From Macrostomum lignano (Eukaryota), in the NCBI GenBank assembly GCA_002269645.1, contig NIVC01000274.1, positions 62,001 to 126,000 of the forward strand: a DNA stretch of 64,000 bases, read 5' to 3'. Position 1 is the first letter of the stretch, and each line of letters begins with the position of its first letter. The position numbers and the translations under genes are program-made. Under the pieces are notes generated by a model, which was not told the DNA's origin, made no database searches, and saw only the letters and a list, made by a program, of their open reading frames with translations. Positions 39,443 to 55,403 of this stretch are shown here, one piece after another.

Positions 39443-39535
39443 ATGACCCGCTTGCGTGTTTTATTTCAAGTATTTTTATATTCGTGTGCACTGATTGTTC
39501 AGCCAGTGTCCGCTGCGCTCTACAATAGACGATTG
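39443..39535 (+). CDS. SDC: syndecan-like proteoglycan exon 1: signal peptide (MTRLRVLFQVFLYSCALIVQPVSAALYNRRL)
   Basis: Basic n-region, hydrophobic core, VSA-A cleavage site. Donor ttg|gtaagc, phase 0. Confidence 0.8.
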
Positions 39536-39817
39536 GTAAGCTATTTGATATTACAACCAAATTTGAAAATGCCGAAAAATAGTAACATATTTTTTCCGAT
39601 CATTTTAACTTTATGTCGTATGCATTATACTATTATTATATATTTAAACTCAAAAGTCTATAAATTTATTTTTGCGCCTATTATTTCTGGAACTCAAATA
39701 AAAGTAAGAATCTTATAAAACAAAAAATTTCACTAGTAAATTTTATATGATTTATAAATACTTTAATGGCTATACTTGATTTTGAAATTATTTACTAAGT
39801 ATTAATGGACACTAATG

Positions 39818-39970
39818 TTTCTCACTGAAATGTTTCTCACTGAAATGTTTCTCACTGAAATGTTTCTCACTGAAATGTTTCTCACTGAAATGTTTTTCAC
39901 TGAAATGTTTCTCACTGAAATGTTTCTCACTGTTTGTGTTATGTCTCAATGTTTCTCAAATGTTTCTCAC
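39818..39970. repeat. 15-bp minisatellite CTCACTGAAATGTTT
   Basis: About 8-9 copies. Confidence 0.88.
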
Positions 39971-40190
39971 GGCGGCTTGTACTAGTAGAAAAATTAATGT
40001 GAAATCTAACAATTAATTTCATCATTGATTTTTTGGGATATAAGCAGTAATAGAAATGCTTTGAAAATTAAATTTACCTTGATATCAACACAAGATTATT
40101 AAGAGAAATGCAAAAAGTTGCTGTACCGTTGTAGCAGTGCAAAAAGAAAGAAATTTAACCCAAATGCTTTAATGAAAAACCGACATTCAG

Positions 40191-40395
40191 ACCGGCAGCG
40201 GCTCCGGCGCTGGCTCGATGGGCGACGACGAAGGCAGCGGCTGGGGCAGCGGAGACTCCGCAGCGTCTGGCCAGAGAAGGCCATCGGAGAAGTCTGGCGA
40301 CCCGAATCAGCAAAACTCCAGCGCGAGACAGCTGGACCTGCCCGTCCTGACCGACCGTTCGGCAACCGAGGAGTGGAACTCTGACGGCAGCACTT
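40191..40395 (+). CDS. SDC: syndecan-like exon 2: Ser-Gly glycosaminoglycan attachment region ([23 protein letters not shown]...)
   Basis: Acceptor attcag|acc (phase 0), donor t|gtgagc (phase 1). Clustered SG dipeptides flanked by acidic residues and a Trp. Confidence 0.8.
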
Positions 40396-40420
40396 GTGAG
40401 CTCTTCTGGGACAGGCACTA

Positions 40421-40696
40421 AGACAGACAGACAGACAGACAGACAGACAGACAGACAGACAGACAGACAGACAGACAGACAGACAGACAGACAGACAGAC
40501 AGACAGACAGACAGACAGACAGACAGACAGACAGACAGACAGACAGACAGACAGACAGACAGACAGACAGACAGACAGACAGACAGACAGACAGACAGAC
40601 AGACAGACAGACAGACAGACAGACAGACAGACAGACAGACAGACAGACAGACAGACAGACAGACAGACAGACAGACAGACAGACAGACAGACAGAC
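40421..40696. repeat. (GACA)n microsatellite
   Basis: About 68 perfect copies. Confidence 0.97.
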
Positions 40697-41379
40697 AGGC
40701 AGGCAGTAGGCGGCAGTCAGCCTCACACTGCTCATCGATCCGATGAAGCTCCTCAGCATCACGCCGGAAGCTTCAGGTCTCCTCAATTCGTAGTGAAAAG
40801 AATGACAGAGAAACAAAAAATTCACACTTACGATTTCATCTCTCTTTGTTCTTGCCGCAAATTTCCCTGACATCCGGAATGGAATGATCTCGTGGTTGAG
40901 GCCTGGATTCACAGCCATCGAATTCATCGCAGTGCTATCGATCGAGCCTGACAAACAGAATTCTTGCTACTAAAAGAGATATCCAGCGTGGCCAAGAAAA
41001 AAGCTGTTTTGGGTAGATCCTGTGGAAGGTGATGAAGCTGGCAGCTGAGTTGACCCCCCCCCCCGGCTGATTTGGGAGGTGTTGGCCTGCAGCTCCTGTC
41101 GCTGGCTCCATTTTAAGCTTTAACTGGCATAAAAATTTTTTTTCTCATAGCTATTTTCATATCGCTCATTAAGCTCAGGTGCGGGTAGGTGCTGCTGCAT
41201 CAATTAGAGCTCAGGCTCAATGTATGCCAAGCGTTAAGTGGATATTTCTGGTTAAACTGGTCATTTTTTGCTGATTGTTGCACCGGTGCTGCTTTTAGGA
41301 GAGGCGGAGTGCTGAACCACATTCTATGTGGCAGTTTTATTATTAAATTCCACTTGGGTTCCACCTTCCTTATGATCCT

Positions 41380-52062: not shown

Positions 52063-52889
52063 TAGGGGAATATTCATTTTTTAATCCTTTTGCCTGGCCC
52101 CAGGTCTCCAAACACATCAGTCGAAAAGTGCCTTCGCCTTTCTTAAGCCTTTCTTAGCCGGTTTTATTGGCCACAAAATGCAACTCGCAGACAGGACAGC
52201 CAAGTTTATTGTCCAGATGGAATCCAGGCCCTGGCTAGCCCTAAATCTCATGCTTTTATTCTTTTTCAGCATTTGGGTTTGTTCTTGTTCCTTGTTCCAT
52301 GCGGCTGCCTTGCGGTGGGCGGAACATTGGGAAGGCAGAGGCGCTGGATTCTGTAGTTTGTGTCGCGTGAAGCCCCCCACCCCACCTCCCCCGAGGCTCT
52401 TGCTAACCGGAACATTAACGAAGGAAAATTAGGAGGATTTCGGCCCCGTATTGATTCGTGAACCTCGAAAAGTAACACTTGGACTGGGACACAAGAAGGC
52501 CGAGTTTAACCTCTTTCTATAGTAGATGTCCGCAAGCTTTCAACCTTAAAGGCTAGATGAGAGAGGAAAAGGGAGAGAATAGAGATAGAGGAGAGGGTAT
52601 TAGGTACATGATAATTGCAGAGTTCGGGAAAATTATCAGAAAGCTTCTTATTTAATCAATTAAGAGAGCTAATTCAACACTTTGATTTTAGTTCATTTTT
52701 TCATTAAAAATTAGTCATAAAACTAACCTTAAACACAAGCATGCAATTCCGTTCTATTCGGAGCTTCGTTCCAAAATCCAGCTACTTATTTTGGGAGTCC
52801 TTGATCTGACTATTAATAAAAAACATAGAATATATTGCTATCCTCTTTTAACCTCGCCATTCCCCTCATCGGACTGCCAGCCAGTTTCT

Positions 52890-53260
52890 TTACTTTGTGA
52901 AGGTTCTTTAGTTTGTGAAGCTTTTTTAGCTTGTGAAGCTTCTTTAGTTTGTGAAGCTTCTTTAGTTTGTGAAGCTTCTTTAGTTTGTGAAGCTTCTTTA
53001 CTTTGTGAAGCTTCTTTAGTTTGTGAAGTTTCTTTACTTTGTGAAGGTTCTTTATTTTGTGAAGCTTCTTTACTTTGTCAAGCTTCTTTACTTTGTCAAG
53101 CTTCTTTAGTTTGTGAAGCTTCTTTAGTTTGTGAAGATTCTTTAGTTTGTTACGGTTATTTAGTTGAGAAGACTATTTAGTTTTTGAAGGTTATTCAGTT
53201 TGTAAAGTAAATTTCTTTAGTTTGTGAAGCTTCTTTAGTTTGTGAAAACTATCATCCACA
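52890..53260. repeat. 18-bp minisatellite GAAGCTTCTTTAGTTTGT
   Basis: Tandem degenerate copies. Confidence 0.87.
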
Positions 53261-54642
53261 AAAAACCTAAAATTATTTAGTTTGTGTAGCTTCAAGGTGG
53301 TGAAGTTTCTAGTTTGTAAAGCGACCCCCTTGGCGTCTGTCCCTTCGGTCTCATTCCGCCCCGCCCTCGGAGAGGAAAGGCGGGCAGATGAAGCGGCCTC
53401 AGCTGGACACTGTCTGCACTTCTTGGGCGAGGGGGGGGGCAGAGAGGGAGACAGCGAATCCTGACGGAGAAAGTTATATGAGGCTGGAATGAGCTGGGGG
53501 CGATGTTGGCAAGGAGCATCATCACTTTTCCTTTCTCGCGCCGCCGCCCCCCGCCAAAAAACAAGTTTTAAGTCAGACAGACCGGCAGACAGACAGGCAG
53601 GCAAACCAAGGCAGGCTAATCCCACCCCACCCGATTCCAATCCCCTCGATCCGAGTTTAGCGCCTGATGCCCGCTTTTCCCACTTCTCTATCCCTCCCTC
53701 TTTCCCCCTCTCTTCCCTGCTCTCCACAGCCGCTTCCCATCCCCCACAAGCATCCAGTCTTTCTCTTCCTCCAAGTGTTCGTTCGCGCCCTCATCCTCCC
53801 AGTCTCCCATCTTGGCGCAGCAGGGGAAGCAGCTACCAAATCCGCGCAAGGCGACGGGTTTGCAAAGTGGCGGACCGTGGCTGGGCGACGGCAACCAAGG
53901 TGGGGGAGGGCGGGGGGACGCCGGGAGAAGAGGAGGGGAGAGGGATGGGGCGGTGGGGCTCTTAAGAGAGCAGAGCAAAGGGGAGCAGGCGGTCCGGGAC
54001 GCTGGTGGAGCAGCTGAGCTAGGGAAGCGCCGCCTGAGACCCCCCCGTTGCCGCGTGTCTGAACGCAGACCACCAGAGTGTGCCAGCAGTCGACTACAAA
54101 AAACTCAAAATGAAAGCCTTCATGGACCGCTGCAAGCTCTGAATGATAGATTCCCTATCAATCCACTTTATTGTAGCTTTTTAACCTGCTTATTTCCTCG
54201 TAAAAACATAGCTGTCTAAGAAGCCCTTTTTTTGGTGAGTTTCCTTCATGCAGTTTGCTCTGACTTTTGTGCTGCTCAAATTCCCTTGAGAGCGTCTCAA
54301 AGCGAGTACCATTTCCACATGTCTCGATCTCAACTGTTAATCTAGCGCTTAATCTAGGTAGCTTTTTGATAATTCCAATGCAGTAGCTATGCGGCACTTA
54401 ATCTACATCTCCGGCCCCATCTTCCCTTACCATGCTCCCTCTCTGCCCCCCCCCTCTCGACTTCCTCTCAACCCCTACCCCTGCAACTCTACGGCAGATC
54501 TTTCTCGTTCTTCTCGATCCTTCTTTCATCTTCACGATCTGAGTGCAACTATTCGTCCGTAGTTGCTCGCACATGAAGACAAGCCTCTTTAGCAAGAATG
54601 ATTATTCTTCTAATATTTTCTTTACCACTTTTTCCATTTTAG

Positions 54643-54664
54643 AAGCCAACAACTGGACACAGAG
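54643..54664 (+). CDS. SDC: syndecan-like micro-exon 6, 22 nt (KPTTGHR)
   Basis: Long polypyrimidine tract plus ttttag| acceptor and gag|gtaaga donor. Phase 0 to 1 exactly restores the frame after exon 5. Confidence 0.58.
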
Positions 54665-54714
54665 GTAAGAATGTGAGATTCGCCTGTGCTAAATAGATTG
54701 AAATTATCAATTGA

Positions 54715-55050
54715 AGATGAAATGGAATGGGTTAGGACGGAATAGAATGAGATGGGGTGGGTTGGGATAGGATAGAATAGTATGGATGAGATGGGATGGG
54801 ATGAGATGATATGGGGTGGGATTGTGTAGTATGGAATAAGATAGGATAGGATAGGATAGGCTGAGATGGGATAAAATGAGATGGGATGGGATAGGCTGGG
54901 ATGGGATGGGATAGGCTGGGATGGGATGGGATAGGCTGGGATGGGATGGTATGGGATAGGATGGGATGGGATAGGCTGAGATGGGATGGAATGGAATGGG
55001 ATAGGATGGGATGGGATAGGATAGGATAGAATAGGATAAGGATGGGATGG
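54715..55050. repeat. (GGGAT/AGGAT)n pentamer repeat
   Basis: Direct observation. Confidence 0.88.
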
Positions 55051-55131
55051 GATTTGTTAGGAGAGTCAGTAATTAAACAGAGCTGGATAAACGTGCAAAA
55101 AGGTATTAAATTGCGAGCTTCACTCCTGCAG

Positions 55132-55403
55132 ATCCCCCAACCACTTCCACAGAGGACATGTCGGACAGCACAACGAACTCGGCCGCTCCGGCCAGCTCAG
55201 GGTCGGCCCTCGTGCAGCCGACGGCCCTAATTGGCATCGTTGCCGGTGGCACCGCGGGTGTCCTACTTATAGTAGCTCTGATAGCGTTTTGCATCTATCG
55301 GAAGCGCAAAGCGGACGAGGGCTCCTACTCGCTGGACCCGGGGAAGAAAGCCCCGGCCAGTAGCGAGTATCAGAAAGCGCCCACTAGGGAATTCTACGCT
55401 TAA
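55132..55403 (+). CDS. SDC: syndecan terminal exon: Thr/Ser stalk, TM helix with GxxxG, cytoplasmic C1-V-C2 ending EFYA
   Basis: Acceptor ctgcag|at (phase 1). ALIGIVAGGTAGVLLIVALIAFCIY-RKRKADEGSYSLD...YQKAPTREFYA* is the diagnostic syndecan tail. Confidence 0.95.

Follow-up and report, generated by a model that had tools for sequence, protein, structure and literature searches.

A syndecan locus of Macrostomum lignano with a thyroglobulin type-1 domain and a probable SEA domain in its ectodomain

Syndecan ectodomains are usually called intrinsically disordered because most of the work on them has been done in vertebrates, flies, and nematodes, and whether that description holds for all syndecans is the question raised by a locus of Macrostomum lignano. 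It lies in a stretch of 64,000 nucleotides of contig NIVC01000274.1 (assembly GCA_002269645.1, positions 62,001 to 126,000, forward strand), the whole of which is called the window below and in whose numbering coordinates are given. Between positions 39443 and 55403, five plus-strand exons joined across four GT...AG introns give a single frame of 1143 nucleotides, i.e., 380 residues and a stop codon. The predicted product is a type I membrane protein that comprises, in this order, a signal peptide, an acidic Ser-Gly (SG) cluster, a thyroglobulin type-1 (TY) domain, a SEA-like region, a Ser/Thr-rich stalk, a transmembrane (TM) helix with a GxxxG motif, and a syndecan tail that ends with EFYA. 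An initial annotation of the locus, made from the letters of the DNA, had described it as a chimeric receptor. We consider it likely that it encodes a syndecan, a cell-surface co-receptor and type I TM proteoglycan that would carry heparan sulfate, whose ectodomain is modular rather than fully disordered, and in which a pedestal made of the TY and SEA domains regulates membrane-proximal shedding.

The single 380-residue open reading frame (ORF) proposed initially is borne out by the joined exons, with intron phases 0, 1, 2, and 1, and the sequence features listed at the time were all found in their places. The exons are as follows, a slash in the donor sequences marking the splice site:

39443-39535, plus strand: exon 1, start codon and signal peptide (MTRLRVLFQVFLYSCALIVQPVSA/A...), donor CGATTG/GTAAGC, phase 0
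40191-40395, plus strand: exon 2, glycosaminoglycan attachment region followed by a disordered linker, donor ACTT/GTGAGC, phase 1
43880-44261, plus strand: exon 3, donor TTCAG/GTTGGC, phase 2
49482-49672, plus strand: exon 4, donor TTCCG/GTGAGT, phase 1
55132-55403, plus strand: exon 5

Three of the four donors conform to GTRAG, that of exon 3 being weaker. An in-frame ATG at 39401, 14 codons 5' of that of exon 1, provides an alternative start, and the layout of the n, h, and c regions together with a VSA motif, read by eye, suggests that the signal peptide is cleaved at VSA/A. Three closely spaced in-frame AGs (49479, 49482, and 49488) could serve as the acceptor of exon 4, 3' of a TACTAAT branch-like site, and the junction between exons 3 and 4 is therefore ambiguous by one or two residues. 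In the annotated frame, the GC content at third codon positions (GC3) amounts to 0.78 in exon 2, 0.76 in exon 3, 0.84 in exon 4, and 0.68 in exon 5, while the GC content of the introns is 0.27-0.49, a difference in favor of the frames being truly coding. Between the exons, the ORF translations show no sign of another signal peptide, SG exon, stop codon, or TM segment. The initial annotation also gave a version of 406 residues with two small exons; when the introns were scanned by motif for concealed exons of the GS(V/I/L) type, nothing convincing emerged. The matching phases, the consistent codon bias, the lack of competing gene parts between the exons, and the precedent of molluscan genes described below thus argue that the five exons form one gene. 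The modules of the protein are distributed over them in the following manner:

40197-40271, plus strand: acidic SG cluster, S34-G58 in exon 2, with a further SG at S66
43885-44079, plus strand: TY domain, C102-C166, within exon 3, with its six Cys and the motifs QC and CFCAD
44083-44261, plus strand: N-terminal half of the SEA-like region, R168-F226, with LILGLSISL (strand 1), YELNNPRSRVFRQHARKIENWLDRLY (helix), and ARVVSF (strand 2)
49482-49656, plus strand: C-terminal half of the SEA-like region, to about S285, with ALTVTVNLTS (strand 3), PTRSGLRRILEDG (helix), and FVIGSRRFWLI (strand 4)
55132-55223, plus strand: Ser/Thr-rich juxtamembrane stalk in the first part of exon 5, DPPTTSTEDMSDSTTNSAAPASSGSALVQPT, with an extra SG (S313-G314)
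55224-55298, plus strand: TM helix, A322-Y346, with AGGTAG, which holds the GxxxG motif (G329-G333)
55299-55403, plus strand: cytoplasmic domain, with C1 (RKRKADEGSY), V (SLDPGKKAPASSE), and C2 (YQKAPTREFYA), stop codon at 55401-55403

Every sequence criterion for syndecans identifies the locus as this animal's syndecan gene. The Pfam Syndecan family (PF01034) matches residues 319-378 with 57.5 bits (E 1.3e-15) for a cut-off of 25.2, which confirms the syndecan tail of the initial annotation. When the C-terminal 66 residues were aligned with those of 12 reference syndecans, Y, R, K, DEGSY, L, Y, E, Y, and A proved invariant in all 13 sequences, and the C1 region of the tail was seen to carry two substitutions, M to K and K to A. 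Pairwise matches were obtained to all 12 (28-54 bits), the best of them to human SDC2 at about 53 bits, and the stalk, of about 35 residues, aligns with the juxtamembrane regions of human SDC2 and SDC1. At the other end of the ectodomain, six SG dipeptides are found in an acidic context between residues 34 and 67, in a layout that resembles the N-terminal SG sites of the aligned syndecans, and the cluster is predicted to bear heparan or chondroitin sulfate, as clusters of this type do. A profile of the syndecan tail retrieves 506 syndecan sequences, and the 120 matches listed are all fragments of 54-116 residues. Neither the whole spliced protein nor exon 5 gave a match in a word-indexed search of a 5.8-billion database, probably as a result of low-complexity words and of the scale of the E-values, and an exact look-up of the exon-5 ORF in the protein collection did not find it either. 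The syndecans of vertebrates, insects, and nematodes (SDC1-4, Sdc, and SDN-1) have the same TM segment, cytoplasmic domain, and N-terminal SG sites as this protein. In contrast, their ectodomains are devoid of folded modules, and the alignment shows only spacer where the TY domain and the SEA-like region are found here.

From its sequence, the TY domain is genuine. Its cysteines are residues 102, 121, 134, 141, 143, and 166, and in an alignment with the TY domains of an oyster syndecan (see below), of EpCAM, and of a generic TY protein, all six of them, together with QC and CxC(V/A)D, fall in matching columns. Q, C, C, C, G, and C are invariant in this alignment, and CFCAD stands in for CWCVD. 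The six-Cys TY domain that had been read initially is also recognized by Pfam (Thyroglobulin_1, PF00086), albeit marginally, with 20.7 bits for the whole protein and 21.9 for the ectodomain (cut-off 20.6; E 1e-4 to 3e-4). A search of 1.84 billion representatives with exon 3 returned 29 matches at E<=1e-3, the best of which (1.6e-54) is to a protein with 21 matched stretches. In all 29, the best stretch listed falls within query residues 1-104, mostly 1-74, and spans the TY part; 10 of the 11 matches that were read are TY-repeat proteins, and the remaining one is not. Among proteins of known structure, the best match to exon 3 in the Protein Data Bank (PDB) is to the TY repeats of saxiphilin. 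A scan of metagenome contigs with exon 3 detected no relatives.

The region that follows is probably a SEA domain. It begins one residue past the last Cys of the TY domain, in the same exon, and it is about 118 residues long, free of Cys, and adjacent to the membrane, all of which is typical of SEA domains; the strands and helices listed above were assigned from the SEA sequence pattern. Its landmarks, as in the initial annotation, are ELNNPRSRVF...IENWLDRLY...ARVVSF...LTVTVNL. An hhalign comparison with SEA regions taken from three syndecans of echinoderms gave an in-register match (P = 0.0025, probability 11.8%), in which LNNPRSRVF faces YNDPESIEY and ARVVSF faces TRVVGF. With a custom profile built from these three regions and from fragments of the solved TMPRSS11-type SEA domains 2E7V and 8VIS, the region scored 13.3 bits, a value reached by none of 2000 composition-preserving shuffles, the best of which scored 5.9. 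The SEA-like domain of the initial annotation is thus upheld by the shuffles and by hhalign, whereas its Pfam score (SEA, PF01390) of 17.2-20.0 bits (E 0.0008-0.006) is under the cut-off of 26.4. Five of the six variants of the exon 3/4 junction were scored, including one that restores G-S at the position of SEA cleavage, and all yielded the same sub-threshold value.

As had been proposed, the domain is probably not autoproteolytic. The preferred gene model lacks a G/SVVV motif, its junction reading VVSF-STRQ-ALTVTV. Read-through of the exon 3 donor (44262-44285) gives ...VVSFRLAGSIGV... (RLAGSIGV), which resembles the SEA self-cleavage motif G/SVVV. That variant was rejected: it needs a poor donor, GGG/GTCACT, and its Pfam SEA score is no higher. 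The motif may be a relic or may have arisen by chance.

The statement of the initial annotation that canonical syndecan ectodomains contain no folded domains is not supported: it reflects the textbook view, to which there are exceptions among invertebrates, some of them published. In sequences taken from the supplement of a 2023 review (PMC10381214), Pfam identifies two TY domains (99.1 bits) in addition to the Syndecan family (91 bits) in oyster XP_034310776 (Crassostrea/Magallana gigas, LOC105329713), a protein that is named "uncharacterized protein" at NCBI and belongs to a cluster of 99 members. Its ORF is intact on many assembled contigs of 1.5-2 kb, which are most likely spliced transcripts, and occurs as isoforms of 363, 385, and 386 residues. 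In the snail Candidula unifasciata (CAJHNH020007268.1), the C-terminal half of a TY domain, with 47% identity to the second TY domain of the oyster protein, is encoded 10 kb 5' of a syndecan tail exon and on the same strand (TY half-exon at 9-122 and tail exon at 13519-13692 of the segment examined). This locus has been automatically annotated as two genes, one of 206 residues (PF00086) and one of 116 residues (PF01034, a fragment devoid of an N-terminus), which are probably the parts of one split syndecan gene. The signal peptide, acidic SG cluster, TY domain, stalk, GxxxG-containing TM segment, C1-V-C2 tail, and final EFYA are common to these molluscan syndecans and the M. lignano protein, and the snail protein resembles it further in that its TY motif takes the form CFC(V/A)D. 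Nevertheless, the molluscan layout comprises two TY domains without a SEA-like region, as opposed to the single TY domain and the SEA-like region of the M. lignano protein; no SEA-like ORF was found in the 10 kb between the TY and tail exons of the snail. The tail diverges more here (RKRKADEGSYSLDP, compared with RMRKKDEGSYPLDE in molluscs), and its divergence and the high GC3 of the gene set it apart from the oyster and snail genes.

SEA domains, for their part, are on record in echinoderm syndecans. A brittle-star skeletal protein with "Syndecan/SEA" domains (Ophiocoma wendtii contig 358) was termed a novel combination in 2015 (PMC4336488), and passages of the 2023 review describe SEA domains in syndecans of holothurians, sea stars (below threshold), and a crinoid, and mention TY domains only for nidogen and SMOC (PMC10381214). 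In our scans, the Pfam SEA scores were 51.9 bits for Eupentacta fraudatrix, 15.3 for Anneissia, and 13.7 for Patiria. The SEA syndecans of Ophiocoma wendtii, Eupentacta fraudatrix, Apostichopus japonicus, Patiria miniata, Asterias rubens, and Anneissia japonica have SG sites, SEA domain, stalk, TM segment, and tail arranged as in M. lignano, and their SEA regions align in register with the region described here. In contrast with the latter, they have no TY domain, and they keep G-S at the cleavage position (PGSV, EGSI, and SGSL). The initial annotation knew of no described protein that combines these modules with a syndecan tail. This is only partly correct, since SEA and TY domains are each known in syndecans; the two together in one syndecan were not found in the full-text searches made for syndecans with TY or SEA domains. 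As SEA syndecans and TY syndecans are both already in public data, this gene is an unusual variant and not a new kind of protein. The term "chimeric" is therefore misleading, and the gene appears to be one of the forms, so far little noticed, that syndecans with modular ectodomains take in invertebrates.

TY and SEA domains also occur beside glycosaminoglycan attachment sites in other proteoglycans, SEA in domain I of perlecan and TY in testican/SPOCK. Unlike the M. lignano protein, both are secreted matrix proteins that have neither a TM segment nor a syndecan tail. The closest parallel in domain order is with EpCAM and Trop2 (TACSTD1/2). The C-domain of EpCAM is accepted as a divergent SEA domain with the TY domain packed on it, and the TY-SEA-TM layout that the initial annotation had ascribed to EpCAM and Trop2 is likewise accepted (PMC7349879; PMC6586460). 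These proteins share with that of M. lignano a TY domain placed directly against a SEA-like domain that lacks autoproteolysis (in M. lignano, probably so), just outside a single TM helix. Nevertheless, EpCAM has an extra N-terminal Cys-rich domain that is missing here, no glycosaminoglycan cluster, and a short, unrelated tail. An hhalign comparison of the M. lignano protein with an EpCAM and Trop2 alignment covered 26 columns of the TY core only (P = 0.09), and neither EpCAM nor Trop2 was among the PDB matches at E <= 10. The resemblance to EpCAM is one of domain order only, and at the level of sequence no link is apparent beyond the generic TY core.

Several results weigh against the reading of the locus as a gene with a single transcript for a syndecan with a TY-SEA ectodomain. 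The Pfam SEA score falls 6-9 bits short of the gathering score, the hhalign probability is low, and no solved SEA structure is matched by sequence in the PDB at E <= 10. The search of the 1.84 billion representatives with exon 3 returned no ortholog that extends over the SEA half, and structure prediction of exon 3 alone is of low confidence (predicted local distance difference test score, pLDDT, of 53) and puts helices where strand 1 of a SEA domain is expected. The exon 3 donor is weak, and ten spliced variants of the predicted transcript had no exact match in a collection of 15 billion proteins. The region beyond the TY domain might then have some other small alpha/beta fold, or consist of a spacer with partial order, and simply match the loose SEA pattern. 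We regard this as unlikely, given that SEA is the sole family other than TM and TY families reported by Pfam for the protein, and that the motifs YxxxLNxPxSxxF, IExxL, and RVVxF and a hydrophobic strand are in register with those of echinoderm syndecan and TMPRSS11-type SEA domains. Moreover, no shuffle comes near the observed score, position, length, and absence of Cys fit a SEA domain, and the SEA domains of the crinoid and sea-star syndecans score lower still in Pfam (15.3 and 13.7 bits). A mis-joined model, in which the TY-SEA exons come from a gene other than that of the syndecan tail exon, would find a parallel in the automatic annotation of the equivalent snail locus as a TY gene and a syndecan gene, and introns 3 and 4 are indeed long (5.2 and 5.5 kb) and filled with minisatellites. 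It is nonetheless most improbable, as all the intron phases match and the parts of a second gene are not evident between the exons. Furthermore, the oyster RefSeq protein and the transcript-like contigs hold TY and syndecan tail in one ORF, and the "second gene" of the snail is the 116-residue fragment without an N-terminus.

The exons for the TY and SEA domains might also belong to the gene and yet be optional, the main product being a disordered syndecan of 189 residues in which exon 2 is spliced to exon 5, and the TY-SEA form being minor or tissue-specific. Exons 3 and 4 make up a symmetric phase 1-1 cassette: exon 2 ends and exon 5 begins in phase 1, and the skipping of both exons keeps the frame and yields a conventional syndecan made of signal peptide, SG cluster, stalk, TM segment, and tail. 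In addition, the donor of exon 3 is the weakest of the splice sites. The search of the 15-billion-protein collection for the skipped isoform gave no match, which is uninformative either way. We lean against such an arrangement while granting it some likelihood, since the GC3 values of exons 3 and 4 (0.76 and 0.84) are those expected of used coding sequence, and the TY form of the oyster protein is the one present on the short contigs that most likely represent transcripts. Common descent of the TY-SEA-TM unit with that of EpCAM and Trop2, as opposed to an independent assembly of common modules, appears very improbable. The order of the domains is the same, the linker is equally short (C-RRLILGLSISL here and C-SERVRTYWIIIEL in EpCAM), and G/SVVV is absent from both SEA domains (PMC7349879). 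However, the negative hhalign and PDB comparisons, the lack of an EpCAM N-domain, and the unrelated tail speak against homology, and both TY and SEA belong to the phase-1 modules that have been shuffled widely.

If the protein is indeed a syndecan with a TY-SEA ectodomain, how might it work? Membrane-proximal shedding is a central control point for syndecans, and some TY domains inhibit proteases; a role of this kind for the TY domain of the M. lignano protein would be a secondary possibility. In a chimera assay, SEA and SEA-like domains with a structured N-terminal neighbor acted as contact-dependent proteolytic switches, whereas SEA domains that lack such a neighbor were cleaved constitutively, and Trop2, with its TY and SEA-like domains, showed moderate switch activity; EpCAM has the layout of Trop2 (PMC6586460). 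Taken together with the place of shedding in the control of syndecans, these observations make the gating of shedding by the TY-SEA pair the most economical hypothesis. The pair would form a compact pedestal beside the membrane, in which it would hide or control the protease sites used for ectodomain shedding. Distal glycosaminoglycan chains carried by the SG cluster would capture ligands or matrix, the EFYA tail would couple the protein to PDZ scaffolds and to the cytoskeleton, as in other syndecans, and the gate might be responsive to pulling on the glycosaminoglycan chains. Glycosaminoglycan substitution, the control of shedding, and any function of the TY domain are proposed here by analogy with these other proteins.

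With phase 1 on both sides of the TY-SEA module, its gain, loss, or skipping could have left the frame intact. The module looks like a shuffled cassette, and it might be alternatively spliced. Free gain and loss would fit the patchy distribution of these modules among syndecans, with two TY domains in molluscs, a SEA domain in echinoderms, and neither in vertebrates, sea urchin, amphioxus, Ciona, or a hemichordate. Another scenario, which we deem quite improbable, would have the ancestral bilaterian syndecan equipped with a TY-SEA pedestal that was kept in M. lignano, of which molluscs kept the TY domain and echinoderms the SEA domain, and both of which were lost in vertebrates, arthropods, and nematodes, the core of EpCAM and Trop2 being derived from a syndecan-like ancestor. 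Together with the oyster, snail, and echinoderm cases, the gene indicates that invertebrate syndecans repeatedly carry folded modules beside the membrane, and it adds a data point on the assembly of TY-SEA-TM receptors by exon shuffling. If the module gates shedding, it would provide a tractable natural model for the structural control of syndecan shedding. The comparison also draws attention to a class of proteins mislabeled by annotation pipelines, as with the "uncharacterized protein" of the oyster and the snail gene split in two.

The window as a whole is eukaryotic DNA in which micro- and minisatellites abound. At the syndecan locus, each of introns 2-4 and the 3' flank contain long tandem arrays whose repeat units measure 4-43 bp, such as (AGAC)71, (ATGG)124, and minisatellites of 28 and 43 bp, and these arrays account for a large share of the locus:

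40421-40706, 41396-42279, 42997-43805, 44310-45530, 46285-47286, 47840-48336, 49007-49400, 50565-52060, 52886-53246, 54722-55053, and 55520-56344: tandem arrays

Farther upstream, a (TCTA)n microsatellite of about 4.2 kb (~21550-25760), with a GC content of 0.25 and an extreme GC skew, reads SIYLSIYL... in one frame. Rfam and tRNA scans of the whole 64-kb window returned no matches, nor did Pfam scans of eight other long ORFs of the window. An ORF of 423 residues at 4679-5950 on the plus strand, with runs of Ala and Gln and a P-loop-like end (YRVQVMGAPRVGKTTMCEQF), had no Pfam match when scanned alone, and might represent exon 1 of a gene for a small GTPase. Another, of 230 residues, at 60346-61038 on the minus strand, has a signal-peptide-like start (MHSLSLLLLLFSTWPQLLPAAPA), many paired Cys in CP...C motifs, and no Pfam match, and may encode a single-exon secreted Cys-rich protein. 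Finally, a myosin essential light chain of the EF-hand type (Pfam EF-hand_7, 3.5e-11) is encoded by an intronless ORF of 156 residues at 62876-63346 on the minus strand. An exact look-up in the protein collection gave no match for it, and its matches in the PDB are to the light chains of scallop and squid (213-221 bits), tarantula (134 bits), and fly and vertebrates (about 100-108 bits). The chain thus resembles molluscan ones most, and taken by itself would suggest a mollusc or a near lophotrochozoan relative as the source, not specifically a flatworm. This intronless ORF could be a retrogene.

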